A stretch of DNA of 63,579 nt, filler included, from Polymyxa betae A26-41 (taxonomy: Eukaryota; Protista; Endomyxa: Phytomyxea), in the NCBI GenBank assembly GCA_003693705.1. It is 7 parts of 7 records of this genome, joined end to end, with 100 filler letters (N's around TTAATTAATTAA, not from the genome) between each part and the next. Parts side by side here need not be neighbours in the genome. Positions count along the whole stretch, not along the records: positions 13,690 to 40,363 come from RBZT01000386.1; 6 more parts are not named here. One strand, 5' to 3'. This document shows positions 18,229 through 40,463 of this stretch, one piece after another (position 1 is the stretch's first letter; each line of letters opens with the position of its first letter). The position numbers were made by a program, and so were the translations under genes. The notes beneath the pieces were generated by a model. It saw nothing but the letters and a program-made list of their open reading frames with translations, had not been told where the DNA came from and did not search any database.

Positions 18229-19197
18229 ATGACAACCCGGCTGGTCGTACTGGCCGCCACCATGGTCGGCGTACTGGCCGACATCTCGCCGTTCCAGGAC
18301 TACTGCAGCGAGCGGACCGAGCGCGACTGCGCTGGGAACGACCCGCTCTACGGGTTCCCGTTATGCGCGTGGGACAGTACGACCAGCGCGTGCGATTTCC
18401 GAGCGCAGTCGTGCCCGCCGGATCTCGGGGCGGCGCTGCAGGCGGTGGCGGGCTGCGGCCCGAGACGCGGGAATCTGTGCCCCCCCGGCTGTACAGCGGC
18501 CGTCGTCCATCTCGAGGCCGTCATCAATGTCCGAGCCGGTTTCAACGCGTCCGTCAGTGACGACGAATTCTGGCGGCGGGTGCGAGCGGATCGGAACGCG
18601 TCGCAGGCTGTTGTCGATCTGATGTATTGCGAATGGAGTCTCGGCATGATCGGACTCCAGATCGATTGCAGCGGCAATTTCACCGCCAATGATGTGACGG
18701 CTGCCATGAACGCTTACCGACATAAGACGCCGTCGTCGTTACCATCGAATAGCTCTCCTCAGACGATCTCTACAAAAGCCATGACGCAGTCGCTACCATC
18801 GAATAGTTCTCCTCAGACGATCTCTACAAAAGCCATGACGCAGTCGCTACCATCGAATAGTTCTCCTCAGACGATCTCTTCAAAAGCCAGTTCTGCTCGT
18901 TCAAAAATCTCTTCCAACACTCCAATTCAAACTTCTGCAAGTGTGATCAATTCAACATCAACGACGACGGCTTCGACCCGATCTATAAGAACTCAAATCG
19001 CCAAGCGCACAACACAGCAGAGCCGAACGAAAACTGCAACAAATAACAGCACAAGATCCTCCTCGAAACCTGTCTCACAAGGCTTCAGGAGAACGTCTTC
19101 GAATGATGTTCCAGCTAGTCGTCAACCTACTATCGGGCAGCATTCGATTATATTACAGTGTTTCATAAACATAAAAATACAAAAGAAATACCACTAA
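18229..19197 (+). CDS. Secreted Cys-rich protein with Ser/Thr-rich mucin-like tail (322 aa)
   Basis: MTTRLVVLAATMVGVLA signal peptide; ten Cys in the N-terminal ~150 aa; S/T-rich repeat tail. Confidence 0.75.
   Translation: MTTRLVVLAATMVGVLADISPFQDYCSERTERDCAGNDPLYGFPLCAWDSTTSACDFRAQSCPPDLGAALQAVAGCGPRRGNLCPPGCTAAVVHLEAVINVRAGFNASVSDDEFWRRVRADRNASQAVVDLMYCEWSLGMIGLQIDCSGNFTANDVTAAMNAYRHKTPSSLPSNSSPQTISTKAMTQSLPSNSSPQTISTKAMTQSLPSNSSPQTISSKASSARSKISSNTPIQTSASVINSTSTTTASTRSIRTQIAKRTTQQSRTKTATNNSTRSSSKPVSQGFRRTSSNDVPASRQPTIGQHSIILQCFINIKIQKKYH
18736..18888 (+). repeat. 54-bp coding tandem repeat (SLPSNSSPQTISTKAMTQ), ~2.8 copies
   Basis: Units start at 18736, 18790 and 18844. Confidence 0.95.
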
Positions 19198-20939: not shown

Positions 20940-23900
20940 AAACAGGATAGAGAGCCTTTGTCATCAAGTCTGCGACGTTGTCGCCGCTTGGGCAGTATTT
21001 GATCTCAATGACGCCCGACTGGACCAGATCGCGGATGAAGTGGTGCCGAACATCTATATGTTTGCATCGTGCGGTGACGCTCTCAGACAGAGCCACATGG
21101 ATCGCCGCCTGATTGTCCTCGTAGACGACGGTTTTATCTTGTTTGAAACCAATCTCCTCCAGAAGTTTTCGACACCAGATTAACTCCTTACTGAAAGTGA
21201 AACACAGGTTTGGCGTCGCGAAGACCAGAAAACTGGACCATTAATAACTCCGATAATACCAGATACGGATTTTCGGCCGTCCTTGTCGCCTGCCCAATCG
21301 GCGTCAACGAAAACCTTCAGTTGCATGTTATCGCCAGCGCCAATGTATTGGATGCCAATATCTAAGCTGCCCTTGAGGTAATGTAAAATCTGCTTAATAG
21401 CTTGAACATGTTGTGCTGTGGGTTTCTGAACAAATCTCGCACAGATGTTCACCGCTGTTGCAATATCCGGTCGAGTAGCAATTGCTGCGTACAGAAGACT
21501 TCCAACGCATTCTCGATATGGAAAGTTAGCTTGCTGTTCATTATCAGAAGCCGTAAAGAGCTGAGTTGAAGGCGATATAGGTGTAGAAACTGGCTTACAG
21601 TCTGCCATACCAAAGCGGTTAAGAACTTGTTCAATATAAGCACGTTGTGAAAGCTTGATCGCTCCTGTCGTCTGATTGTGCTCCACTCTCATTCCCAGTA
21701 TGAAACTTATCTCGCCCAGGTCCTTAATTTGATATTCAGCGGCTAGTTTAACTTTAACTTTCTTGAGCAGGTCTGGCTTCTTGGCAGCTATTCCTAAGTC
21801 GTCAACGTACAGTGCGATCATAACAAGATCATCATCTTGACCGCTTACGAAAAGACATGGTTCGACTTGTGTGTTTTGAAAGCCCATTTCTCGTAAGGTT
21901 GCAGAAACAGTTTTCCACCATTGCCTTCCCGATTGTTTTAGACCATAGACGGCCTTCTGGAGTCGACAAACAACACGTTCACCATTCGGGCCGTGTTTCT
22001 CGAAACCCTGAGGCTGCTGCATGTAAATAGTCTCCGTCAATGGCGAATTCAGAAAAGCCGTGACCACATCCAGATGATGTGGAACCATACCCATGGAGGC
22101 TGCTGCTGAGAAGAAAATTCGAAGACCAGTCATCGATATAACCGGTGCAAACGTATCAACATAATCGACACCATAGACTTGAGAGAAGCCGCGCGACCAA
22201 TCTTGCTTTAAACTTTTCAGGTAGTCCATTTGGGTCAGTCTTTATCTTGTAAACCCATTTTGAGCTGATCACTTTTGCATCTGTAGGTGGTGGCACTAAA
22301 TCCCACGTACTGTTGGTGGCCATGCTGCTGAGCACAGTCTTCATGGCTGCAATCCACTCTTCCTTATCATCAGAACTTACGGCTTGATGGTACGTGGCTG
22401 GCTGGTCAATTAGCTGTGAATTCTGATCCATCATGAAGCAGGCTCCAATGTAGCCATATTCTTGGGCGAACGTTAACGGGGGTGCTGACTTGCGGGTAGA
22501 ACGTCGTGGCGCTGATCGAACGTCAGAACTTTCTTGTAAGTCGATTGGTTCATCGTCATAGTGATTCTCTAAAGCTGTATGGAATGTATCTTCGTCGTCA
22601 CTAACTTGAGTATCAGCATCAGGAATAAATGTTTCTTCGATCACCGCTCGGGTTTGCGTGTCAGGTTCGTCGTCTCGGGCTGGTAATCCCTCCTGGCGAC
22701 GGACTGATGGTGCAACTGTCCCATGATCTTCAATCAAATCGAATCCTGCGACCTCTCGCGACGATGTTAATTTCCCAGTTTTCAATCGAATCAGGTAACC
22801 TTGCTCTTCTGAGGCAATACCAACGAATCGTGCTTCCTGTGCTTTAGGGTCCAAAGCACTTCTTGAATTGTCAAGGGTCTTCACAAAAACCTTCTTGCCA
22901 AAGGTTTGGACCATCTTCAAGCACGGGGCCTTGTCGAAACGGCGCTCATATGGAGTGATACCTTTTAATGAAGCATGTGGCGACCGGTTCCTTACAAAAG
23001 CAGCATATGTGATAGCTTCAGTCCACCAAGATGGCGGAGCGTCGGTTTCAGCCATCATACTTCTCATCGAATCTTTCAGGGTCCGGTTCGCTCTTTCAGC
23101 CACGCCGTTTTGCTGTGGTGTATATGGGCAGCTCATTATCTGCTTGATGCCCCTCCTGGCACAGAACTGCTTGAACTCGTTGCTACCATATTCACCGCCG
23201 TTATCGCTGATGAGAGCCTTAACACGTCTCGGGTCAAATTCAGTTTCGATTCTGTAAACTAGCAGCTTGAACTTCGAAAACACGTCTGACTTCTTCTCTA
23301 AAGGATAAAGTGAGATATGACGCGAGTAATCATCAATGAAAGTCACGAAGAAGCGAGCTCCACCAGAACCGCGCGTTTCAAAAGGTCCACAGACATTAGA
23401 ATGAAATATTTCGGCTGGGCGGTTGGCTCGGATACTGGTTGGCCTACTGTGAAAGGGGCGACGACTCATCTTCCCTTTGAGGCACGATTCGCACGTCAAA
23501 TTTGTAATCTTACCATTGATCTTGATGATTCCTGCTTTTGCTAATTGTTCGATAGCATCATAATGCAGGTGACCAAGTCGCAAATGCCAGTTTTGGATCT
23601 GATCAGCTGGCTGTGATAATGGAGATGCCGGCCGCATATCAACCTTCTCGGACGCCGAAAAATTAGCCGAATTTGACGTCGTATCGTCCGTTGAATCATT
23701 CAAAACAAATAGGTCGCCTGTTCGAGACCCTGTGGCGATGATTTTCCCGTTCTTGTTAATTTCGACTCCCATCGTCTTGCGCTTAAACGTGATTTCGTCA
23801 ACGCCGTTATCCAAAGCTTTCGTAATGGAGACCAAATTTGCTGTAAGACCTGGAACAACCATACGTTTTGAAGTCTGATCTGTCCATTTACAGAATCACC

Positions 23901-25007
23901 GATAGCTGCGACACCTAATGCAGTTCCATCTCCAACTGTTACTGAGGTCTTTGTCGGTGCTGGTCGAGAGCTCTGGAGACACTCCGAACTTCCTGTCATA
24001 TGGGTTGTTGCTCCGGAATCGATTATCCATGGCTTCGATTGCAGAGGCTTGTCATAACCATTGAAGGAGGCCATAGTTTTATTGTCTTTCTTTGGAGCAG
24101 GGGCAGGGCAGTCCTTGGCGAAGTGTCCCTTGTCTTGGCATCGATGACAGGTAATTTCATCACTTTTCTTCGCCTTTGTTTTCGATCGATTTTGGCGATT
24201 ATTGTGATGATTTTTGGAATTTCGTACAACAAATGCTGGTTCTTGAGAGCTCCCGGTTCCTTTGCTGTTTTTGAATTTTCCATCTCGAGCCTTTTGGTTT
24301 TTGGCGGCAGCCTCTGATGCAAGATATGATACAGCTGTGTCAAGATTCAGATTTTGCTGACGGATATAAGAACTCGCATAGTCATAGTTTTCTGGCAGTC
24401 CAGCCAGAATAACGTATAATACATCCTCATCCGTGCAACTACCTTGAATCTCTTTTATCTCGCGTTGCTTTTGCCTTACCGCATCCAAAAATGCTGCCAT
24501 CGACTTGAAACTTGAAAATCGCATCTGAAAGAGCTCCTGTCGGCGACGAAACCGCTCGTGGCCGGATTTTGCCATAAAATGCGCCTCTAATATATCCCAC
24601 GCTTGCTTGGCGGTATTCAACCCCATTATTTTCATTTTCATCTCTGTGTTAATACATTTTGCTAGCTGGTGCAAAGCTAGTGCATGTCGATGACTCCAAT
24701 CGTTAATAGTATTAGCATTTGATTCGCTCGGAACTGGCTGAAGGTCGGCTCCGGCAATGATGCCCCAACAATTAGCCTCTTGAGCTCCTAACTTAAACTC
24801 CCATGACCATAACGACCAATTGCTTCCATTAAGCAAATCGGACGTGAACTTGTTGCTCGCAGTGCTGGTCGATCCTGACATCGAGTATGCACGTAAACTG
24901 GGCCCATAACCTCCCATAACCTGTTAGATTCGGACGTTAGTTAGGTCAGAGTTTTAGGAAGAAAATTCTCTCTGGATTGTTATAGTAAATTAGGTTGATT
25001 ACTAACA
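20940..25007 (-). mobile_element. Ty1/Copia LTR retrotransposon, degenerate, 3' LTR not found
   Basis: Gag with CHRCQDKGHFAKDC, protease WIIDSGATTHM, WHLRLGHL, integrase, RT (LYVDD), RNase H (DADWAG...KHIDVRHHFIRD...ADLMTK). Frameshifts near 23860, 22190 and 21180. PBS GGTTATGGGCCCAG lies next to a TGTTAG...CTAACA LTR. Confidence 0.95.
24922..25007 (-). repeat. Candidate 86-bp 5' LTR of the Copia element
   Basis: Bounded by inverted TGTTAG/CTAACA and abutting the PBS. Confidence 0.6.
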
Positions 25008-25476: not shown

Positions 25477-26585
25477 TCAGACGTGGACAAATTCGATCAA
25501 GTCGCCCTTGTGAGAAGCTGTCCGAAAGGCATTTGGGTCGTCCGAATTCAAACCTTCTTTATATTGGTCGACGAGTGCGCTGCTACTCCAGTCAACATCC
25601 CGGGCGAGTAGGCGGAACTGAGTTTCATTTTCGGCAAACGTCGCACAGTTTTTTTGCTTCAAAGCCCGGATAGATCTAACAGAAGAACGGCGACGGTGAG
25701 GATCGTCGAAAGACCCTTTAAGAGTCGAAAGAAATAGTTCTAGATTGTGAAGTACAGGTGAATTTTCCAAAATTCTCGGCACTAACCAATCGGCCGCCAG
25801 GCCGGTCATTAAACTCGTATAAAGACCAATTCGGACTGTATCTGTAGTGAAAAGTTGCTGGTAGATTCTGAGATAATGCTCCACCTGGGCAGACAAGGTT
25901 CGAAACTTCGAAATATCGCCATCAAACGTAGGCGGCCGGGGCAGATCTGGATGTCGAGCCGGCGCCGATTGAGCTAACTTGGGTCGTGAATCTGATGTTG
26001 CAACTGGAGTAATTGTCGGTGAATTGATTCCAACGTTATAGAATCGTCATCGCTACTAGTGAACGTGCGCTGTTGAATCGAGCTAGTTATCGGTGAAGTT
26101 TATTGTCGTGAAATGAGATGTTGTAACTGTTGTAACTGCTGGTGCAGCGAATTTAAGGTTATAGTATTTTCGACAGCGTCGGTATTAGAATTGACAGCAT
26201 TCAGCTCCCGATTAGCTGTTTCTGACGAGACGAAGGGCTCTGAAGGGTCAAGAGTCTGCCCTGATCCAATATCATCCAGATCGTCTCGATCAAACTGTTA
26301 TGAGCCAACTACTACAAGAGTCGAGAAATGGTGGAAAAGAGGAAGGAAAGAGGAAGAAGAGAAGAGAAGAGAAGAAGAGAAGAAGAATATCTAAGAAGAA
26401 GAAGGCGGGAGCGACACAGCAAGTGATGTTGGTACAAACGTTCGTTGATCGGACTGAGGCCTAAGGCTCAGCCCGTCAGAAGCAGTAGTTTATTTTGTAG
26501 TGATGTAATAAATCACAGTAACACGAGATATTTGTGTTACTGAAAAGTTCGAGAACTACTAATTTGTCTTGACGAAGTCATGACA
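25477..26585 (-). mobile_element. Ty3/Gypsy remnant: 5' LTR (26296-26585) plus broken gag
   Basis: Retrotrans_gag-like PPTFDGD...LMTGLAADW...FDDPH...LKQ...FRLLA...W...L..Y..GL; 290-bp LTR bounded by TGTTATGA/TCATGACA. Confidence 0.8.
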
Positions 26586-26873: not shown

Positions 26874-29449
26874 GAATCCTTAGATTTTAACCTTTGACCA
26901 ATTCGAAATAAAGCAAAAATCCTGGGCATTTGCAATTCTCCGAAAAACTGCGTACGGACTTTTGGATCCTGAATTGAGCTTTCCATCAAAGTTGGCGGAT
27001 TAAGACAGTGGACACCATAACAACAATAACAGCTCCGCAGCTGTTAGTCCAGGGCTTACTTAAACTGTATTGCACAGAGGGTGGTGTCCTCATCGTTTCT
27101 ACATTATGCTGTCGACGAAAGAGCACGAAGATCGCAGAGGTGAAAGCGAGGCTGAAGGAGTCAATCTCTCAGCATCGATCTTTGCTTGGTTCTTGCCGTC
27201 TTTGCATACCCAGACATGGCCGGATTTATCGATTACGATGCGATGCGTTCTAAGCCGTTCGGCAACATCGATATCCCGGACTGGGAAGACCTGCTCGACC
27301 TGGTCCAGCGCGATGAGACTCGGTTCGCGCACGCCCCACGCTGGTCTGCGGAAGCGGCCGTTCAGGCTAACTGCTGCCTGATCATTCGGGTAATTACGAC
27401 TTTTTTCGAAATGTTGGTTGCCCAGCTCACTCTTGAAGGTATCGTCAGTTGCGTTGCTAATGATGGGGGTGCTCAAATATGCCGGCAGTTTCTTTGTTTT
27501 TTTTTTACAAACTCAACAGCACTGGAAGGGTGGTCGCCTTGTTTAGGCGCACGACAAAAATGCTGAGCATCCTGGTCTGGAGAACAAACACTGGGTATGT
27601 TTTTGAAAACAATAATTTTACCAAATTTTGACTCTATGTTTCTAGTTTTCGCCACCTCTCAACAGCGAATATCGCAAGGAAGTCTCTGGGCGATCTGACG
27701 TGACCAAATTAATTCGTGTTGCCAATCACGCTCTTCCATTTGTTGGAGTGGTGGATCACATTCTCCGTCCAGGTAACCACGTTCATCAAAGAATCATAAT
27801 TAATTCATTAATCAGTACAGGAATGTCTTCACTCCACTCCATACAGATCCAGGTCGTTTTTGGGCGTGTCTGTTTCCAATCCAACTTCCATCTCTGGACC
27901 CGCCACGCTGTTTCAAGATCTGACCGACCCAGTCACTAATGAGGTATCAGAATAATCAGATGAATCCAATTTCAAACGAGCACATTGAGTTCCAAGCTCC
28001 GATCATACTATAACGTCAAAACCAAACTGACCGAACTAGCTCTCTGGTCTGTCGCGAGCAAGGGATGAACCTCAAGGCCCGGGTCTGGCGGCACAATCCG
28101 ATGGGATCCATCACCAAGCTGGTCGAAGAAGCCAAGAAATACCGGGAGATTTGCAAAATCCTTTATAACATTCGGAGCAGTATTTTGAGTCAATTTCCCA
28201 TAATCCACCTCACGCAACAGATCCGTGGTTTCCCGAACTAGTATCTACGAGATCGCATTTCGCTTGTGATCGATTTTATGATGGCAGACAGATCCCAGCT
28301 GGCCCGCATCATTCGTTCTTTAAAGCGCCGATGTCGCTGGAACGCAGAAGTTCCTGTTTACCATTACAAACCTGCAGCCACCCCTGGAGCCTGATGGTTT
28401 TGCAAGTGAGCGTTCATGAATTTTATTCGTAAATTCATCTAAATGATAATTTCACAAGCGAAGGTCTTGGCGGTCCTGACCGGGATTGTAGCTATGCCTA
28501 CGATCGAGAGTTCGCTTCGAGCACGTAAAGAGGCGAAATTCAATCGGGATCTTGCCCTCTACCAGGCAAATATCATCGATAAGGAAGGGTTTATTCGTCG
28601 TACCAGCAAGTGAATTTGCCACATCATATTATCTTCCCTACAAATACAGATTCAATGTTGATACCATCTTCATTTAGAATCTCTAGTTGGTCTTCCATCC
28701 TTTGCAATGTCACTTGTCAAATGGACACATTTAGTGCTCGCATCGCGATGTCGTCGTCGCCGTAGATGATCGCAACGTCGTCCGCCTTCTCGATTAACCT
28801 TGATTCGGCAAGGCCGTCAGTCCTATTTTTTGGGTGCTCCTCGCTGTGTTGACATTGTTGTATCATTTGATGAATGAAATGATTATCCGTGCCTCTAGGG
28901 TTTCCCATTAGGGTTTCATACCCGGACGAAATTGGTTACGCAACACATTCACCGGTCATCGTATTCGCTCGCCTTGTTTATCGTCATATTTGCCCATGTC
29001 GTTTTTTCGCATCGTACTCGATACTTCTCAACGGGTAGTGATATAGTCTTATCTATGTTATATCACCACTGATACTAACTATTCTAATATCATTCCTAAC
29101 AGATACAGGGCAAGATATGTTCTGTTTTCGATTGGCATTAATCAAGATTAGGTAAATTTCTATTCAAATGTAAGTACAGTTTTCAATTCACCGAATTTCG
29201 CTAATATACGTGCTTAGATGATATCCTGAGAGAGATATGCTACAATCTAAACCCCCACCCCATTGCTAATGCCAGCGAAAAAATCCCCCGAACGTCTTTA
29301 TCGCTTCGGCGGTTTCCTCATTGACATCCCTTCATCGCTTCGGCGATCATTCCAAAAAAGGTCTTTGATGACATGGTGCTTCACCTATTATTCCTTCAAA
29401 ACAATATATAATTAAAATTCTCAACTCCCTATCATTGTTCATATTTAGT

Positions 29450-29796: not shown

Positions 29797-31360
29797 ATGT
29801 CGGATGCCCGATCTGAATCGGCCGATGATCAATACATCCGCCTGCAGCTGACGGCGGCGAATATATGCCATCCTGAGAAGACGAATTGTGCTGGGGAAGA
29901 TGCATATGCTATTCGAGATTACGGTGATCGCCAACTATTTGCTGTTGCAGATGGCGGTATGTAAAACTTGATGAAAATTTCTTTGGTTTTTTGGTATTCG
30001 TTTCGAATGTTCTAAAAAGTGCTTTTCTTATGCTATTGCTCAGTTTTCATCAATATATTAAGATGTCTTTATCAGCAATTTCCTGAATCATTAATATTGT
30101 TGCCATGGTTCGCCCTTTTATTGTTTTATTGTTGCTTTGAGTATTGCTTAGTAAGATTGCTGTTTTCCAGAACCGTTTCTTATTGTCCTAATCTTTGATA
30201 GTTTCTGGCTCCAGAAAATTTGGAGATCCAGCTGAATTCTCTCGTTCCTTGCTGCTATACACATTGCACAATCTAGAGTTAGGCATGGCCATTCCCACGG
30301 CCGTTGCTGCTGCTGTGGACCATGCACGTGGGAAGGGAAAGAAAGGTTCCACAACTTTTTTAAGTAAGCCATTTTTTGGTTCGACTTTTTTTTTCTGTTT
30401 TGTCGTCTAAAGCAGTCTATATTTGGCTCAAGCTCGTTTCTAATGCATTCACTCTAATTTATTGGTATCTTGTAGTTGGGCTTCTGGATTCGAATCCGCA
30501 TGAATGTTCTCGCTGCTCGGTGAAGCTGTATAATTTGGGCGATTCAATAGCCATGCTATTCCGTGCCCATAACAATGAGCGATATAAAGTTCTCGCTCAG
30601 ACATTGCCACAAAGTGAAACAAGGTTCGTCCATTTTCTCTTTAAATTTGCTTGTCGAATTCCCGATTAAGTTTTCGCATTCGTTTTGAATCGGATTTACG
30701 ACTTCACTTGGTTCTCAGTTCAATTGGTCAATGGTCCTTCAATTGCAGTAAAGTATGTTCTGTTTCATACTGATGCCTAATTGTTAGAGGTTACTTCCAT
30801 ACACCTTTCCAGTTTCATCACGACTGTGATCATTCTCGTGGTGTTTCCGACATGCAATCGTACGATTGGACCTTAGAGCCTGGGGATGTGCTTGTTGCTG
30901 GCACTGATGGGTTATTCGACTTTCTTGACGTCGAGGTATCTGCCATCGGTTTTGTTTGCGTTTTGTGCTGCTAAGATTATTTTCGATTTCCAGAAAGTCA
31001 TCGCTTCGATTGAACGTTATCGGGATAATTTCGAGAACCTCGCTGATCATCTCGCCAAGCAGGTGCTTCCAGGAACTTTTTCGAGATTGATGCTTTTCGC
31101 AATTAATAATCCTTTGTTCAATTTCGGCTGTCATGCGTTTTTTTCTGCATCTTAGGTCTTAGTTTATTTGAGGGGCCTTTGCTGATATGCTCGGCACTTT
31201 TTTTCTCTCAGTTATTGGTAATTTTTCAATATAGGCTCGATGTGCCCAAAGATGTGAATATCATTTCGACGATATCAGCGTCGTCGTTGCTGTGGCTCAA
31301 AGCTCAGAAAAGGGGGGTTCACCTGGTTTGGCCATCGATAACTTTGGCTCTGTTTCTTAA
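29797..31360 (+). CDS. PTC7/PPTC7-like PP2C protein phosphatase, multi-exon (internal exon boundaries approximate)
   Basis: Motifs in order: HPEK...GEDAY, FAVADG|GT intron, GSTT, NLGDS, GDVLVAGTDGLFD, DDISVVV. Confidence 0.82.
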
Positions 31361-31953
31361 GAAATATATCCCACCGCATTGCTCAGGTCTGCTATTTATA
31401 AACTCGAAACCCAACTGAAACTGGATGCTTTTAAAATTATAACTTTTGTCGTTTCCTCGTATAAAATGTTCCCAGAATTAGCAGATTATAAATTCGTAAG
31501 AACGAGCATCTTGGAATTCTCAGTCGTGAGATTTTGGCGCGCAACCCGACTGAAGCGGCGCAGCCTCCTTCGACAGCTGTGCCCGTGACATCGTTCTGTT
31601 GCCGTTTTCTGTCTCGTCTTCACGAATATCGGTCGACATTGACCAAATAGCCGGCATTGAGCTCGGCCTGTGTCGAAGGCTGTGTCATCAAAAAGCTTTC
31701 GGACGTCGCAGCGATCAAGAACATTTTAATATAAGCATCGCAGCTCTCGCATTTAGATAAAAAATCGCGCCTCCATTATAGAGTAAGGTACATTGTTGGG
31801 CAGATTCTGTGGATCATTCCTACTGTTATCCTTATCGATTGTCATATTATTTTAGTTATTTCTTGTTGTTATACTTTTTTCGTTTCAAAAAGCTTCTATA
31901 GAAGTTGAAATTCTAGTTTAGGAGTTGGCGTGATCTGCCGAACTGAAAAGTAA

Positions 31954-34900
31954 ATGTCAAATAACACTTTCCAAAATATGGATCCGAATTCCGCATCGGT
32001 TGTGGATGACGATCACACTAAATTTCGTGCACGATTCGAGCGCCTTGCAACTTTGAGCTTGCGTTATGACCCGGATTTGCTGCAAGCTTCCCCGGCGTCG
32101 TCGACCACGTCTCGGTCTCCATTCCAGCCAGTTAAGATTCGAACTGATTGGTCCAGGCCCGATCTTGATGAGGAAGGGGATAGCGAATTGAATTCCTCTG
32201 TAAGCTGTAAACAACTTTCTTTGTCACGAAATTCAACCTTGCTTTGTTTGCAATTTCTACCAACTCTTTGATTTACTATCGGTCTGTAATGACCATTTTC
32301 GACTTCCGGAGCCTAGTTTTCTCGGTTCTGTTATCATATCGTCCCTATGCTAATCTCTAATTAATCATGATGACAGGGAATTTACAAGTTCTCTCTGGAA
32401 AATCTAAATGATTCGCAAATTTTGGATACTGGTAGTCTAAAACCAAATTTAGAGCATTTCGAGTCATCACCAGTTCTTAACCCTGTGAATATCGATGTAA
32501 AGCCTTCTCCACCATCTCCGACTGCCTTTGTCTCCTGTAGCAGCGATCATTTGCAAAAATCAAGCGGGTCGAGATTTTCTGATATTCTCAGCTCGTCGAG
32601 TGAGAATGAGTCGGACATGGAGCTGAGCTCAACTTGTGGAGCCATTTTGCTGGAAAGGCTTGAGGGCGAATCTGACCAAACCCAGAATTCTTCTGACACT
32701 GACACGGTTTTTGGCGAGTCTGGCCAATTCGCAAGTACCGAAAGCGAGGAATCTTCAAATTTAGGTTTGCTCCATTTTGCTTTTTTGTAATTGTGCAGTT
32801 TCCGTCATGCTTTCGCTTACTCCAGATTGTTTTTCACCCTATTTGCTAACGTTTTTTGTTAGAATCGAAGCCAGTTGCTATTGATTTCGAACATTGTTCA
32901 GAGATTAATGCAACCTCGTCACATCTCGAATCGGATGTCATTAATACCGCCATGTCGGTTGCTATGGCTGAACCTGAAGTACCAGAAGATGCTATTTTGC
33001 ATTCTTCGCGTCATGACAGCTTGAAGGAATCTGATTCAACTTTTCAACCTGATGAGCAAACGGCCATATTAGAACCTGAGAATGCTATCGATTATGTCAA
33101 TGCAACTCCTACCCAGCGTATTCATATTCGGTCAGCTGAAGGGACTCCTGCGCGTGCTCTCTTCCCAGACAAGACCCGTTCAGCTGAAGGTACTCCCATA
33201 AAAGTACATCCTTTAATCGCCAGTGGGGCTCCGGTTTCCGCTTCGCTGCATATCGAGGGAACTCCTAGCAGGCGTCATCGTGCTATCGACCAAGTACAGT
33301 CTGAGGTAATCTTCCGCATTAGACAATTTTTTATCGTCTCTGCTTTTGCTTATATACGTTTTAGGTCCCAGAACTCGTATTGCGTCTCAACTCTAAGCAT
33401 GATGATTGGACCCGTCGAATAGATGCTTTGAAACGCATCAGTCGATTCACGACATTTAACATGTCCCCTTCTGCATTGGCTGAAGCCTGTCTTCCGCTTC
33501 TTGATCCTATAGCACTTCAGCTTCAAGATCTTCGCTCTCAGGTACGAAATTATTCTTATTGTGATTGATTTACTTTAACAAATTTCTACTGTAGATTGTT
33601 AAACAAGCTTGCATTACCATTGGAGATTTGTCGGAATGTCTTGGCTTCCAATTTCACCTCTATGCAAGGCGCTTATTCCCACGACTTCTTGACTTGCTTC
33701 GCATTGCTAAAAAGGTCAGCTATGTGTTTGTCAATGTTCTTCAGGTGTTTTGATCAATATTATTTCGTTCATTATCGCTTATCGTTGCTCAGATTCTTTG
33801 CCTTAGGTTATGTCTTCCGCAGGTGATGAGTGCATGCGCCGAATTATCACTCACTCTCACGTTGATGCTATTGAAATTATCATCCAAGAATCAGCTAGCA
33901 ACAAATCGCCTATTGTTCGATGCCGCTGTGTTGAACTTATTATTTTGGCATTGCAAACGTGGAATGTCATTCAGCTTGCATCTTATGAGACATCAATCGG
34001 ATTGCTGTTCAGTAAGGTAACCGCCTAAAGCGATGCCTTTATTTCTATCGTGTTTGACCTCTGCCAAGATTTGCAGCGATTCTACCAAAGATGTTAGAAC
34101 AGCTGGAAAACGCATGTTTGCTGAATTCGCTCGAATATGGCGTGATGACTCTCAAGATCTGTTCAAAGCATTAGACCAAAAGTTGCAAAAAGCTATTCTA
34201 ACAGATCACCCTCAGCTACAGGAGGTAGTCGCATTTTGTGATGAACAATTCGTTAGAAGCGATTTCGACAAAAGCGAAGTAAGATCATAATTTTTTTACT
34301 CGCTTCGTTTGGGCCTTTGACCTTTCCATCTTGTGAGCATACTTTCTAGTTGTACTGCTGTATTTTGCTTTCGCTGTGTAATTGATTTATCTTTAGCCGA
34401 GCACGCCAGTGCGTTTAAGTCTGTCTGAGGTAAAAGCCAAGATACGGCGAGAAAGTATTGCTCGCTGTCCAAATGCTAACGAAGTCGTTATTGTTCAAAA
34501 AGCACAAACCCCTGTTGCTGATTCCTCGCTTCCCATAAGTAGCTCCTCAGCGCCTTATGCAGAACCTCCCAAAACGCCAGTTCGGTCCAATGGTAGTCAA
34601 GCGGATAGCTCTTTGGCTCCGGAGTCTCAAAATCGTTTTGTGCATCCACCTAGGTCGGTTTGTAGCTGACTCTGCTTCTTTCGTCAATATTTTTTTCTCT
34701 AGGTCTCCGTCGTTGAGCTTCAAATTTGATCAATCGCTCCCATCCATTCAACATGAACGCGGTCTTCTTGCTCCCGCCTTATCGCCCATTCCCCCGGAAT
34801 TCCTCGAAGGGTTCCCTGTACCTGTCCCCTTGCGAGACTTGATCGCGCCTGAGCGGCGGCCGATAATGCCTGAGCCTAGTCCTCTTGTCAAACATTCCTC

Positions 34901-37143
34901 TCGTCGGTAATTGACCGTATTATCTACTTAAATATCGATCTGACCTCGTTTAGGTTCACCAGTCGTGTTGTCGATACTCCTGTAAACGGAAGATTCGATG
35001 AAGGCGATAATGACGATGATTCTTCTTCGAGTACATCGAGCTGCTCTACTGTTGATCAGTCTCTCGATGAGGCTGATGACAACGGCGAAGTTTCTGTGTC
35101 TTCTTCTATAGCAGCCGAATCAGTAGATGTACTTGCTAGAGAAACTGCCCCATGTTTGTCTTCGGATTCGGATCTTGACAGAAGTATAATTTTCTGTTCG
35201 CCTTTCCCATCTATTAACTGTTTTTTCTTTCAGAAAAAGAGGAAATGCTGATCTTGGAGAACAAGCTTCAGTATTTAAGGACGATGGCTACCTCTGTGTT
35301 CGACGAAGGTGATTCTCCAGTTCGCACTATCGAAATTCATCACGACCTGACATCGTCCTCCAAGTTCGTATTTTTTAAATCGGTCTCAATTAATTGACTT
35401 GCTAATTTTGTGAAATGCTTTAGGGTCGCCGCTTTTTGTCCCAATCAGATGAAGGAAATGTAGGATCCCAGATCCTCGTCTTGTATTTTTTATTGACTTC
35501 TTTCAGCGACTCGCCCGTTGATATGCCGACCACCCCAGCCACTCAAGTTCTTTCCTCTGAGAGGTACCTTGCCTTCTTTTTGTTTTTCATCTCAACTCTT
35601 GCACAGAAGCGAATTAAACTGCGATTCCATTTTAAAAGTCGGGAGCTATTCTTTTGAAGCGTCCAAGTCGCCGAAAGATGTTTTGAGTGCTGTTCTCTCA
35701 ACGCCTCCTTCCGAGCGTGTATTCAGATCGCCCGATAAGACTCCATTACCTCCTCCGTCTGATCTGAGAATGCATTCTGCTCCTAGCCATCGTGATAATG
35801 ATGAACAGGAAAATAATTCGATTCTGCGATCCATTTTTTTCACTCTATTGTCTTTGATCGTCTTCGCTCTTTTGTTCCATGGGCTTCCCGCTTTCCTTAA
35901 ACCTGGCTCGGATGATTTGGTATCACGGACGAGGCTTCATTTCCCGATCATCCATCCGCAATCCGGACCGCCGTCTGAAACTCATCAGAAAATTGACATT
36001 CCTGTTCGCGACTCTGCTCAGCGTTCACAAAAATTTGCGGAATCTGTGGAGTAACTGCTACATTTTTATTCCCATTTTCCAGATTACTGACTTTCTTCAT
36101 TATTAGATCCAGTGATGTCCCTAAACAAGTGAATTCTGTAAACGACCTCATCTCCAGCGGCATCGTTGAATCAGAAGATACCGAAAAGATTCTTCAGGAC
36201 CAGCCCACTTTGGATCCACAGTCAAATGTCAATATTCAGGTCGCTCCAACAGAGCAATCTGAAACTAGTTATTCTGAGGACTCTGGCTCTGTCGTTTTCA
36301 TTAATTCGGATATTCCAAGTGCTTCTATTTCTGAGCCTTATGATTCTGCTGAATCACCTCCGTCGTTTGAAGAAGTGGCTGCTTTTGTTGAAGAGCCACT
36401 TATCTCCGAAGATGCCTCGATCATTTCCGACGATGCTGAACTCGGTCGGGCGTTTAAGGTCGAATTTGTTGACTTCGTCGACTTCGAAAGCAACTCCACG
36501 GTTGCAATGGTGTCCACTCCAGTTAATACTGATGTCGCTCTCGGCAATTCCACCGAGACTGATTCTCTTAATGATTTGACATTGCTCGATCATGAACAAT
36601 CTGACAGTTTCGGCTCGCAATCTGACAGTAAGTTTTCCTATCTAATTTTATTGTTTACTCTGGTTCTGGGTTTGTATAATATTTCTTCTTCCTTATTTAT
36701 TCTCTGTAGGATCCTCTGATAGTGGCATTCCATTAACACCGAAACTTGCTTGGCTCTACTCTCTAATCGTCGCTGCTGTCTGTTGGCTCACTTACAGAAT
36801 TCGAACTGTTCCGGTTCGCGCTCATACTTTCGAACGTGATCCAGACTTCGACCTAACTGGTGTTACTACCACACCCGAATGGGATATCAATCTCGATTCT
36901 GTGCTACCCTCGGGGCCGTCTCCGTTACCCCAGCCTGGTGGTACTGATTTCCAGAAATGGACTCACATAAAAAAGGTAAATCGATTTCTTACTATTTCCT
37001 CGCCACTGCTGCTGTTATTTTATCTCTTCAATACGACAGTATTCGTCTAAACAGTATCATAGGATGGGACCAGCATGACTCTGTTCTCGCCTCTTCGGCG
37101 AACTCTTCGTATCAGGCGGCCTCGGCGTCCAACTCAGTTTTGA
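31954..37143 (+). CDS. Large multi-exon protein: low-complexity N-terminus, CLASP_N/TOG HEAT domain, two predicted TM helices
   Basis: DDWTRRIDALKRI...QDLRSQ|IVKQAC...AKK|VMSSAGDECMR...SPIVRCRC...DSTKDVRTAGK is CLASP_N-like. Splice phases checked by hand from 33306 to 36975 are all compatible. TM segments SIFFTLLSLIVFALLFHGL and LAWLYSLIVAAVCWLTY. First exons and last acceptor are less certain. Confidence 0.78.
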
Positions 37144-37516
37144 ATTTTCCACATAACTAATGCATCAATCTCTCTATTTTACAGATTGTTTAATGGTCAT
37201 TATTTTTCTCGATAATGTAATAAATTCCACATATATTGTATAGTTTAATATATCGTATTGTGCTGCTGTTTTGATTCCAATCATGATGATTACAAAAGAA
37301 AAATGACTTCTGATTCTCTATCTGCTTTAAAGTGCAAATAACTGCATCGCTTCATTTTGGAATCCCTTCATTTTCCAATTAGTTGTCAGACGATACAGAC
37401 TGCCTAGCTGTCAATATAACTGAACCTTCATTGAGTGTCTGGTCAAAACTCAAAAGAGCTTATGCTCGTGATCCGAATCAGAAAAGACAATTTCTGAAGC
37501 CATCTTTGAAAAAAGA

Positions 37517-37598
37517 AGCCGTCGACGAGATTTGAACTCGCGCGGGCAGAACCCAGTAGATTTCGAATCTACCACCTTGACCACTCGGTCACAACGGC
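37517..37598 (-). tRNA. tRNA-Ser(CGA)
   Basis: 82-nt cloverleaf; anticodon arm GTAGA-TTCGAAA-TCTAC; long variable arm; T-arm GAGTTCAAATCTC; TTTTTT terminator. Confidence 0.93.
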
Positions 37599-37805
37599 AC
37601 TTCTCTGTTGTCGGACAGGATGGCTAAAGCAGGTAATGTTCCGGTCGTCATCAACATGAATCTTTAGGAAGTTTTGTTTTATGCAAAAGTTGTTATGTAA
37701 GTGACTGTTGAATTACTATACTTGATAGGAGTAATCATCTCTGGGGCGCATTTTATCATCTGTAATTTTGTGTCGCAGGAGGATGTCCGAATGATATTCA
37801 AATTT

Positions 37806-39017
37806 CGGTAAACTCTTTTTTCAGTCGACGGAAAACAGGCTGCGCTTCAGTCGACGGAGGCGCAGCCTGTTTTCCGTCACAAAGCACTCTATTCCTTCTC
37901 TTTTCTCTTTCTCTCCTCTATGACTAGATTCTGCCTGTTAGGTTCTCTCAGATTCTGTCTGTTAGGTTTTCTTTTTCTCATCTACGAATAGATTCTGTCT
38001 GTAAGCCTCGTTCTTACTTGCCAATGTGAAATCGAATGCGGAATTGGATCAACCGGCCGCAAGGCGACTCCCAGGTTGGAGATTTCCCAGTTTTAGAAGG
38101 GTCGAACGCGCGCTTGAAAAACAAGGGCCGAAAGAAGGCAGAGTTATAAAAATTTAATTTATTCCAGTTCTCTAAACGACCGATGGCTGTTGAAAAACCA
38201 CCCCCCTTTATCGTTTAGTGGTCAAAGATTTTTCCTTTTCATACATTCCACGTATCACTCAAGATACAGAAATGGACGTTGAGCAAACCCATCACGATTC
38301 AAGACTGAAAGCCTATCACCAAATCACGGTTCCTCATAGCCATGCTAACCGTTATACTCTGTTGTTAGGAGATTGCAAAGAACTCATCAATTTAGCAGTC
38401 AACGATACTCATTTTTTCCAGATTTGTCGCATGGCCATTGCAGATCTAATGGCCAAGCGTGGGATAGAATCATCCGACAAGGGTGTCTCTGTGATGGAAC
38501 CAGGTTTCGGGATAACACCATAAGAACTGCCAGAAAACTTCATGAAGTTTGTACAGCTTAAGAAAACTCCGCCAGTTAATGGCCAAGCGTGGGATAGAAT
38601 CATCCGACAACGATATCTCTGTGATGGAACCAGCGGCAGAAGGGGGAGGAATCAAAGCCCCGGAAAGGCGAAAACGTCAAGCGGGACGGCTGCCGATGAG
38701 TGAGCTTCAGAACATGTCAACAATCTCCATGCGAAACAAGAAACGATTACCAACATCATGCAAGGTTTGCGTTGCTAAGAACGCTGTCCCAACAGATAAT
38801 CACAGAGCAGGAAGCTCTCGGTGCCCCTTCACTGTAAACGGATAATAAAACAGAGGCGTCGCAAGAAGGGTACGAAAGGGAACGAGATAGATAGAGACCT
38901 CAGTACAGAGGAGCGAAAGGGATAGATGGCATATAGTGCTTTGTGACGGAAAACAGGCTGCGCCTCCGTCGACTGAAGCGCAGCCTGTTTTCCGTCTACT
39001 GAAAAAAAAGTTTACCG
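37806..39017. mobile_element. Non-autonomous Mutator-like element (MULE), 1212 bp
   Basis: ~85-bp TIRs (CGGTAAAC...GTTTACCG); perfect 9-bp TSD TTCAAATTT at 37797-37805 and 39018-39026. Internal ORF pieces resemble a MULE transposase C-terminus (KRQAGR...CKVC...NHRAGSSRCP). Confidence 0.9.
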
Positions 39018-39269
39018 TTCAAATTTAACATTGCTGTTTGCAAATTTTTCAAGAAACAACCGCATTTCAGAAAGCAGTCTGTGATTATATACGTTTTCGA
39101 TCGGTAAGCGTATTCTAACCGACTACCGCCGTTCGGGTTATGCTTCGGTCGGATACCGAGTGACCAAAAATCAGCTCAAAATTGCATCTTGAGAACACAA
39201 GCAATGAGTGCAATCGGATCATAATTGAAGGTGGAATTTTTAGTGATAGAGTTAAGGTCGCTGGTCTTG

Positions 39270-40112
39270 TTAGGCCTGGGGTTGATGGCTTCTGCGGCAT
39301 CGGTTGCCGTACTTACATCGCTTGCGGATGTGATCTCTACAAAGCTCTCGGCCTGCATCATCGTAGCAAATGCGGCGGCGTTTCGCATCGAGTTCGGCCG
39401 TGCGTTTCAGGCGTTCTTCTTCCTCAAAGTTGTATTCCAGAAGGACCTCATACTTACGAGGAGAACGTTCAACAGTCCCGCGCTTGCGCTTATCATACTC
39501 GTAAACCGCTCGCCATGGGTACCATTGGGAGCGGTTCAGAATAATAAGTTGATGGTTTAGCATGCCTCGAATATAGCTACGAGGCGCGCCATTCGAGAGG
39601 AGGATTTCGGTGACCGATGCGTGAATTTGAATCCAGATGAACAGGTCGGGGATCTTTGCGGTCTTGAGGACCAATCGTTCACCGCTTTTCAAGACGATGG
39701 TTTCGTCTGCAAAGGATGCGTCCGTTGCGGCGTAGAGCTCACCGTAATCGATGAGCTTCCAGTCTAGAATCTTGGCCTTAAAGTCAGCGGGAATAAACAA
39801 GAAAGCGTTGCTGACGAGGGTTGCGTTCTTGGCTAAGGCGAGCTCTTTCTTCAGAGCGTCGACTTGAGCCTGAAGTTCCTTCTCTTTTTCCAGAAAAGGC
39901 TCGATGATCGCCTCCATTTGGTTGTAGGAAGTCGGTAGAGGAAGAGAGTCGGACTCGGATTCATGATCCTGGTGAGAGGCGGAATCAGAATCGGAGGAGT
40001 CGTTAGGGGAGGAGGAGTCGTTGCTGTCCAATGCCTGTCTGTTGGCATTCCCCTTGGCCGAAGCTTTCGCCTTGGTACGAGGGTTCTTAGAACGAGCAGA
40101 GGCGGGAGCCAT
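39270..40112 (-). CDS. Ngaro/DIRS-type tyrosine-recombinase retrotransposon gag-like ORF1
   Basis: Intact 280 aa: KI...K.ID..EL, W..., YPWRAVYEYD..R and a terminal CCCH finger CRDHIRKRCKYGNRCRRSH. Confidence 0.65.
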   Translation of the reverse strand: MAPASARSKNPRTKAKASAKGNANRQALDSNDSSSPNDSSDSDSASHQDHESESDSLPLPTSYNQMEAIIEPFLEKEKELQAQVDALKKELALAKNATLVSNAFLFIPADFKAKILDWKLIDYGELYAATDASFADETIVLKSGERLVLKTAKIPDLFIWIQIHASVTEILLSNGAPRSYIRGMLNHQLIILNRSQWYPWRAVYEYDKRKRGTVERSPRKYEVLLEYNFEEEERLKRTAELDAKRRRICYDDAGRELCRDHIRKRCKYGNRCRRSHQPQA

Positions 40113-40463
40113 GCAATCGAGCGTACGAGATCAGACTAAATTTTTCTTTGAAAATAGTCCGGTCTCGGCTTTTACAGCAACGATACAATATACGAGGGAG
40201 ATCAAAACCAGGGATTGGAAACTAATAATTTCGCCTGATGAATAATTCTTATTCCCTCTGTAGAATTATTTATTGGCGGCTCAGGAATCAGAGAATGATT
40301 CAGTGTAGATGGATGGGTTTATTGAATTATTCTTTGCCAATGTAAAGGGGCGGGTACGCTATTNNNNNNNNNNNNNNNNNNNNNNNNNNNNNNNNNNNNN
40401 NNNNNNNTTAATTAATTAANNNNNNNNNNNNNNNNNNNNNNNNNNNNNNNNNNNNNNNNNNNN

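Follow-up and report, generated by a model that had tools for sequence, protein, structure and literature searches.

Gene model of the locus

The stretch of Polymyxa betae A26-41 DNA analysed here (the window, 63,579 nucleotides from assembly GCA_003693705.1) carries, in its part from record RBZT01000386.1, an intron-rich gene whose predicted product combines one CLASP-type TOG domain with two putative transmembrane (TM) helices. We refer to it as the TOG-TM gene. Window 30500-40363 was read in stop-free frames and we obtained a model of 17 exons on the + strand, coding for 1339 amino acids (aa), or about 1,330-1,340 aa over the 16- or 17-exon variants (Table 1). All 16 introns are of the GT-AG type (43-177 nt) with compatible phases, and there is no stop in the exons or in the split codons. 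Compared with the exons, nearly all these introns contain less GC and more T. Their small size and large number fit a plasmodiophorid, P. brassicae genes having on average 4 introns of 60 bp (PMC4471660), and the GC content of the piece is 45.0%, that of P. betae being 45.1% (PMC6328671). Judging from the GC content and the short introns, sugar beet itself is unlikely to be the source of this DNA.

The start codon is the ATG at 31954 or that at 31978, and the gene begins 593 nt after the stop, at 31360, of an upstream PP2C-like gene; on the 3' side, an AATAAA is present at 37219. Mini-exon 12 (36 nt) is optional, since skipping it leaves the frame intact, and exon 15, which ends at 36627, can start at 36107 or 36113, the two acceptors being 6 nt apart and frame-neutral. 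The basic C-terminal tail announced in a preliminary description of this locus depends on the acceptor at 37062; a gene parser, described below, chooses this acceptor, but the AGs at 37039 and 37054 would give a short and different tail.

Sequence searches were run on single exons or on a deposited fragment of the protein, P0001. A large HMMER search with exon 6 returned only one protein, this fragment, which is 100% identical. It corresponds to KMS93350.1 (BVRB_032370, partial), on the 734-bp contig AYZY01080568.1 of the Beta vulgaris assembly GCA_000510975.1. Since the contig (1-734) is identical to window 33282-34015, it is probably, judging from this identity, a contaminant in the RefBeet assembly, which fits the presence of a beet root parasite in the sequenced material. 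In the deposited model, exons 3, 4, 5 and 6 are spliced at the same positions as in ours; it is an independent prediction and not a transcript proof.

Table 1. Features of the TOG-TM gene and of its surroundings, in window coordinates (CDK, cyclin-dependent kinase; ORF, open reading frame; LTR, long terminal repeat)
Feature	Position	Strand	Description and basis
TOG-TM gene model	31954-37143	+	17 exons
Exons 1-9	31954-32199, 32377-32764, 32863-33305, 33365-33541, 33595-33714, 33807-34016, 34069-34278, 34397-34653, 34703-34906	+	
Exons 10-17	34954-35183, 35234-35363, 35424-35459, 35507-35563, 35607-36050, 36107-36627, 36710-36975, 37063-37143	+	
N-terminal region	31954..33305	+	Exons 1-3; about 358 aa; acidic, low-complexity
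Threefold EGTP repeat	33130-33275		Directly before TOG; each copy a full CDK-type site (aa 306, 322, 345)
TOG domain	33365..34278	+	Exons 4-7; single CLASP-type TOG2 (CLASP_N) HEAT domain; Pfam PF12348, PDB 4K92 and 3WOY
Trp	33407..33409	+	Equivalent of CLASP1 W338 / Stu1 W339, HEAT A loop; alignment, PMC6035287, PMC6641166, PMC5994897
Arg of DLRS loop	33533..33535	+	Asn at the same position in XMAP215-family TOG 2QK2; alignment, PMC5994897
Arg, HEAT D	33918..33920	+	Equivalent of CLASP1 R461, taken as CLASP2 R462; alignment counting
Linker	34397..35829	+	Exons 8-13 and 5' part of exon 14; about 380 aa; S/P-rich, net-acidic; four full CDK-type sites
TM1	35830..35886	+	aa ~978; inside exon 14; Phe/Leu-rich, uncharged; KD19 2.46
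Loop	35890..36744	+	3' part of exon 14, exon 15, start of exon 16; 237 aa; acidic, S/T-rich
TM2	36745..36795	+	aa ~1237; exon 16; 17 residues, uncharged; Trp/Tyr at both ends, then basic residues
Likely last exon	37063..37143	+	Arg-rich tail and stop
ORF, 211 aa	15513-16148	-	Several hydrophobic segments; no significant family hit
ORF, Cys-rich N-terminal half	18229-19197	+	Signal-peptide-like start; three 54-nt tandem S/T-rich repeats (18735-18896); no significant Pfam hit
Copia-type LTR retrotransposon	21180-24917	-	gag, protease, integrase, RVT_2; three overlapping ORFs
Ty3/gypsy-type gag fragment	25477-25896	-	
Intron-rich gene	27000-28700	+	
PP2C-like gene	29797-31360	+	Intron-rich
tRNA-Ser(CGA) gene	37517-37598	-	Just 3' of the TOG-TM gene
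1.2-kb element	37806-39017		94-nt terminal inverted repeats (95%), an internal palindrome in each; perfect 9-bp target-site duplication (37797-37805, 39018-39026)
ORF, 280 aa	39270-40112	-	Single ORF; C-terminal CCCH zinc finger

A single TOG2 domain of the CLASP type

The preliminary description placed a CLASP_N-like HEAT domain at 33366-34278. Pfam and PDB comparisons bear this out, except that the domain starts at 33365. The deposited fragment (exons 3-6) matches CLASP_N over profile positions 19-162 (E 1.4e-12), and exon 7 matches positions 186-226/227 (E 1.2e-5). In the PDB, the fragment matches the TOG2 domains of CLASP1 (E 2e-23) and CLASP2 (E 4e-21), and exon 6 by itself matches TOG2 of both human proteins (28.7 bits for CLASP1). 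The match with TOG2 of Msps, of the XMAP215 family (2QK2), is weak (E 0.011).

In the PDB alignment, CLASP1 W338, S457 and R461 are conserved, and the position of V458 is occupied by a Pro, as in Stu2 (P471 position). The Arg of the DLRS loop is taken, from the alignment, as the CLASP-specific Arg (Stu1 R386). In addition, the part of exon 7 matched by Pfam opens with a D-S-x-x-D-V-R motif, whose Arg, at 34096, may on this profile match be compared with the HEAT-E Arg (CLASP1 R503 / Stu1 R525). The activity of CLASP2 TOG2 requires each of W339, R462 and R504, and the R462E replacement abolishes it (PMC6035287). Stu1 needs the CLASP-specific Arg, and an isolated TOG2 suppresses catastrophe (PMC5994897); a single TOG2 is enough for anti-catastrophe activity (PMC6035287, PMC5994897). 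Because tubulin-contact residues known to be needed in CLASP2 and Stu1 are kept here, the domain looks functional.

We did not find a second HEAT/TOG domain with Pfam, exon by exon, in exons 1-3, 8-11 and 14-17, which are of low complexity, nor a Pfam hit for the C-terminal CLIP-interacting/dimerisation domain, exon 16 consisting of one helix and then coil. For the deposited fragment, AlphaFold run on the single sequence gave a poor model (pLDDT 48), from which Foldseek produced no meaningful result.

With CLASP/Stu1/Cls1, the protein shares TOG2 over profile positions 19-226/227, the Trp, the DLRS Arg, the HEAT-D Ser and Arg, and an S/P-rich disordered region after the TOG domain. Unlike CLASPs, it has one TOG domain, without TOG1, TOG3 or the C-terminal CLIP-interacting domain detectable by Pfam; its linker is net acidic instead of basic and has no convincing SxIP motif, and two predicted TM helices stand in place of the C-terminal targeting domain. 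On sequence grounds, we consider the protein as CLASP-derived but, in view of the missing TOG array, basic/SxIP region and C-terminal domain, not as a CLASP proper. With XMAP215/Stu2/Msps it has in common the TOG fold, the weak match to 2QK2 and the Pro at the Stu2 P471 position; however, it has an Arg instead of the Asn of the HEAT-B loop, a single TOG domain, no basic region, and TM helices. The Arg and the single TOG domain led us to reject an XMAP215 type. TOD-1 from C. elegans and SPIRAL2 from Arabidopsis also have one TOG domain and a low-complexity tail; TOD-1 is of the XMAP215 type and SPIRAL2 is described as a cytosolic hexamer, in a study that makes no mention of a membrane or transmembrane segment (10.64898/2026.02.23.707544).

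Probably one gene rather than two

To examine the continuity between the TOG domain and the helices, we trained a 3-periodic coding model on exons 1-7 alone and scored against an intron background. The held-out exons 8-11 and 13-16 score as coding in the frame of the gene model (+9 to +93 bits; +46.8 bits for exon 16), the two other frames being lower. Frame support for exon 12 is ambiguous, and every intron scores as non-coding. A gene parser, small and with arbitrary penalties, was likewise trained on exons 1-7 and introns 1-6 alone and run with four penalty settings. In all four it recovered a single gene that extends across both helices as far as 37143, and its only departures from our model, both frame-neutral, were the skipping of exon 12 and an exon 15 acceptor 6 nt later.

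Two closely packed genes, or two transcripts of one locus, would instead give two products. The first, a soluble protein with the single TOG domain, would end near 35312 or 35463 (at 34290 with readthrough of intron 7); the second, a membrane protein with the two helices, would start at the ATG at 35523 or 34866. Soluble single-TOG proteins are known, such as TOD-1 and SPIRAL2 (10.64898/2026.02.23.707544), P. brassicae has very short intergenic spaces and overlapping untranslated regions (PMC4815078), and the ambiguous exon 12 would also agree with a split. When two genes were forced, the parse was worse in 4/4 settings: with gaps of 59-210 nt the deficit was only 0.6-14 bits, with gaps of at least 300 nt it was 19-37 bits. 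At the true junction of the PP2C-like and TOG-TM genes, in contrast, the same parser favours two genes by 57-78 bits. The linker thus does not look intergenic. Furthermore, the split with a 210-nt gap has to use the AG at 35241 over that at 35233, which is the first AG past the pyrimidine tract and the second-best of 86 acceptors in a held-out scan, and it throws away the better-scoring frame of exon 11. There is no AATAAA between 34279 and 35600, and the largest non-coding gap between the TOG domain and TM1 is at most 143 nt, compared with 593 nt at the true upstream boundary. We therefore think it unlikely that two genes are present, and probable, as far as the genomic sequence can tell, that the TOG domain and the TM helices belong to one polypeptide. 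The spliced connection without stop or intergenic gap that was first described, bringing a CLASP-type TOG domain in frame with two uncharged hydrophobic segments, is thus maintained, as a prediction that is well supported.

Two hydrophobic segments and the regions that flank them

TM1 and TM2, both with a low hydrophobic moment, are the sole TM-like segments in the whole model. TM2 has a KD19 of 1.58 and a moment of 0.18, and the best HEAT helix of the model reaches a KD19 of 1.41. By an approximate scale of biological hydrophobicity, TM1 (-3.1) and TM2 (-1.2) alone are favourable, the next segment being at +2.4. With AlphaFold, exon 16 gave a confident helix at exon residues 10-31, with a pLDDT of 88-92 over TM2, followed by coil. 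Hydrophobicity alone is weak evidence, since T-rich introns and base-shuffled TM DNA also yield hydrophobic stretches, the latter attaining the observed hydrophobicity in 4-5% of trials. The possibility that a hydrophobic segment is in fact intronic was considered. TM1 as a hidden intron was ruled out: its flanks are coding in the same frame and the downstream acceptors have no usable score, so that TM1 is exonic. TM2 is preceded by a strong acceptor at 36709.

The linker between the TOG domain and TM1 has net charges of -16 and -6. A number of SP/TP sites had been put forward as a sign of CDK regulation. Plain SP/TP sites are only marginally above what composition predicts (p 0.05-0.12), so the case for CDK control rests on full S/T-P-x-K/R sites, which are indeed enriched: the three disordered stretches before TM1 contain 3, 3 and 1 of them (p 0.007, 0.018 and 0.20), that is 7 observed for about 1.2 expected. 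The loop between the helices has no full CDK site, no Cys and no Pfam hit; it has two N-x-T sequons and is presumed to be lumenal.

The charge bias around TM1 is uninformative. Four K/R residues are found within the 15 aa after TM2; together with the CDK-type sites, present only outside the loop, and with the loop sequons, they suggest that both termini are on one side of the membrane, in agreement with the topology predicted at first.

A proposed membrane-anchored TOG protein

The best reading of these data is that the TOG-TM protein is derived from CLASP, has a single TOG domain and is targeted by its own helices in place of adaptors. In animals, CLASPs reach membranes through adaptors, their C-terminal domain binding GCC185, GOLGA4 or LL5beta (PMC10443533); here, the two helices would take over the job of both this domain and the adaptors. 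Since there is no signal peptide, we propose TM1 as an internal signal-anchor. The N-terminal part of about 975 aa and the short basic tail would then face the cytoplasm or nucleoplasm, with the acidic loop in the lumen. On its flexible tether of about 380 residues, the TOG domain would bind microtubule ends reaching the membrane, capturing or stabilising them; it would suppress catastrophe and promote rescue, like an isolated CLASP TOG2 kept close to microtubules. With CDK-type sites on either side of the TOG domain, this membrane-microtubule link could be switched during the cell cycle.

The membrane would be the continuum of the endoplasmic reticulum (ER) and nuclear envelope, where, in the multinucleate plasmodium, the protein could keep nuclei or spindle poles attached to microtubules. 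On indirect grounds, this location appears the most likely, given the short helices, the cell-cycle sites and the precedent of Dictyostelium Kif9 (PMC11816917). Kif9, at a protist nuclear envelope, is a microtubule regulator carrying a TM anchor of its own (PMC11816917), as the present protein would be. The two are analogues only: Kif9 is a kinesin-13 depolymeriser with one C-terminal TM helix and is not homologous, whereas the protein described here is predicted to stabilise microtubules. Taken as a whole, with its ER/nuclear-envelope location, the membrane-anchored single-TOG2 protein is our best explanation, held tentatively and with slightly less than even confidence. The narrower proposal that a single CLASP TOG2, set in the plasmodiophorid nuclear envelope by its own two helices, stabilises spindle or centriolar microtubules under CDK control is possible, though rather doubtful.

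Several observations weigh against a membrane-anchored TOG protein. The architecture is a prediction from one genome. The margin in favour of one gene falls to 0.6-5 bits under split-favouring settings, the weakest stretch being 35234-35523, near exons 11-13, and the short intergenic spaces and overlapping untranslated regions of P. brassicae point the same way. As regards the helices, the coding-versus-intron model gives ambiguous scores for both TM cores, TM2 is short and moderately hydrophobic, and the translated T-rich introns of the gene reach a KD19 of 2.33 (intron 15). The linker has neither a basic lattice-binding (S/R-rich) region nor a convincing SxIP motif, only a chance-level SSLP being present on the linker side; such a linker would, however, fit targeting via the membrane and not tip-tracking. 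Finally, a relative with the same architecture was not found by the exon and fragment searches, which are blind to diverged full-length proteins.

The scope of these searches has to be considered. Word searches with exon 6, exon 14 and the deposited fragment gave only self matches; they cover proteins of 0.55-1.75x the query length and are silent on full-length kin. The HMMER search with exon 6, blank apart from the identical fragment, reflects a limit of sensitivity and not absence, since even human CLASP1 scores only 28.7 bits. Scans of metagenomes, prokaryotic genomes and viral contigs were blank, and a CLASP entry is absent from the supplementary data of the plasmodiophorid literature searched. 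No TM-bearing TOG or CLASP protein was found in the literature searched, most subscription journals falling outside its coverage; the architecture may already be present, unremarked, in domain catalogues.

The same fused protein could reside on another membrane, namely the plasma membrane of the plasmodium or zoospore, spore-cleavage membranes or the membrane of the Rohr/Stachel infection apparatus, the loop being then an external glycosylated stalk. The evidence for the architecture applies equally to this case, and the loop, rich in S/T, has two sequons and lacks a fold. Among ER/Golgi residents, short Phe-rich helices are more usual than among plasma-membrane proteins, which counts against such a location, as do the CDK-type sites, which hint at cell-cycle control. 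Animal CLASPs are active at the cortex and Golgi (PMC10443533), and phytomyxids possess Rohr and Stachel as well as plasmodial cleavage (PMC3040567). On balance, we regard another membrane as a minor possibility.

One gene with another topology would also keep the TOG domain tethered to a membrane: only TM1 would span it, TM2 being interfacial or skipped, or intron 15 would be retained and give a hydrophobic end, so that the C-terminus would be lumenal or absent. TM2, with its KD19 of only 1.58, scores higher in another frame of the coding model, there is a weak acceptor at 36797, and intron 15, if read on in frame, encodes a hydrophobic stretch and then a stop. However, exon 16 follows a strong acceptor (36709) and scores well in the model frame, and TM2 combines a low hydrophobic moment, aromatic ends, a basic C-terminal flank and a confident AlphaFold helix; this topology, and with it a TOG domain tethered in this manner, is quite improbable.

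The likeness to MAN1/Src1 nuclear-envelope proteins drawn in the preliminary description did not hold beyond the number of helices: two helices flanking a lumenal region, both ends predicted on the same side, a linker that is long and disordered, and a tail of basic residues do recall the Src1-L layout (PMC11816917), but no exon scanned gave a Pfam hit for MSC (exons 14-17) or HeH/LEM (exons 1-3), the loop is Cys-free and there is no folded domain after TM2, so that membership of MAN1/Src1/Heh1 was rejected and a family member with its HeH domain swapped for TOG is very improbable, even though the missing HeH/LEM alone is not decisive, Dictyostelium Src1 being also without it (PMC11816917).

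Neighbouring genes and mobile elements

The PP2C-like gene that served as boundary control was recognised by eye from its PP2C-type phosphatase motifs, its first exon having no Pfam hit. Beyond the tRNA gene, on the 3' side, the 1.2-kb element is a non-autonomous Mutator-like element or a miniature inverted-repeat transposable element; no transposase hit was obtained for it. The ORF with the CCCH zinc finger possibly encodes a gag-like protein of a mobile element. Further upstream, the Copia-type element is apparently frameshifted, since its coding sequence is split over three overlapping ORFs, and the product of the ORF with a Cys-rich N-terminal half resembles a secreted protein. For three of the neighbouring ORFs, exact look-ups gave no independent annotation.

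Significance for plasmodiophorids

For the TOG proteins CLASP, XMAP215, TOD-1 and SPIRAL2, no membrane anchor is reported in the literature searched. Engineered constructs have shown in vitro that a single TOG2 is active when tethered close to microtubules (PMC6035287). If the reading of a membrane-anchored TOG protein is true, a natural TOG2-TM fusion would mean that this single tethered activity is used in nature as a stand-alone module, and microtubules would be tied directly to a membrane without the usual adaptor proteins.

Cruciform mitosis and the infection apparatus of plasmodiophorids have been described by electron microscopy, and molecular detail is scarce. The infection structures of phytomyxids are described in PMC3040567. 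With the TOG-TM protein, membrane-microtubule attachment in this group would have a candidate that is named and can be tested. Its link to cruciform mitosis is a hypothesis; if the protein does reside in the nuclear envelope, it would be a first molecular handle on this form of division.

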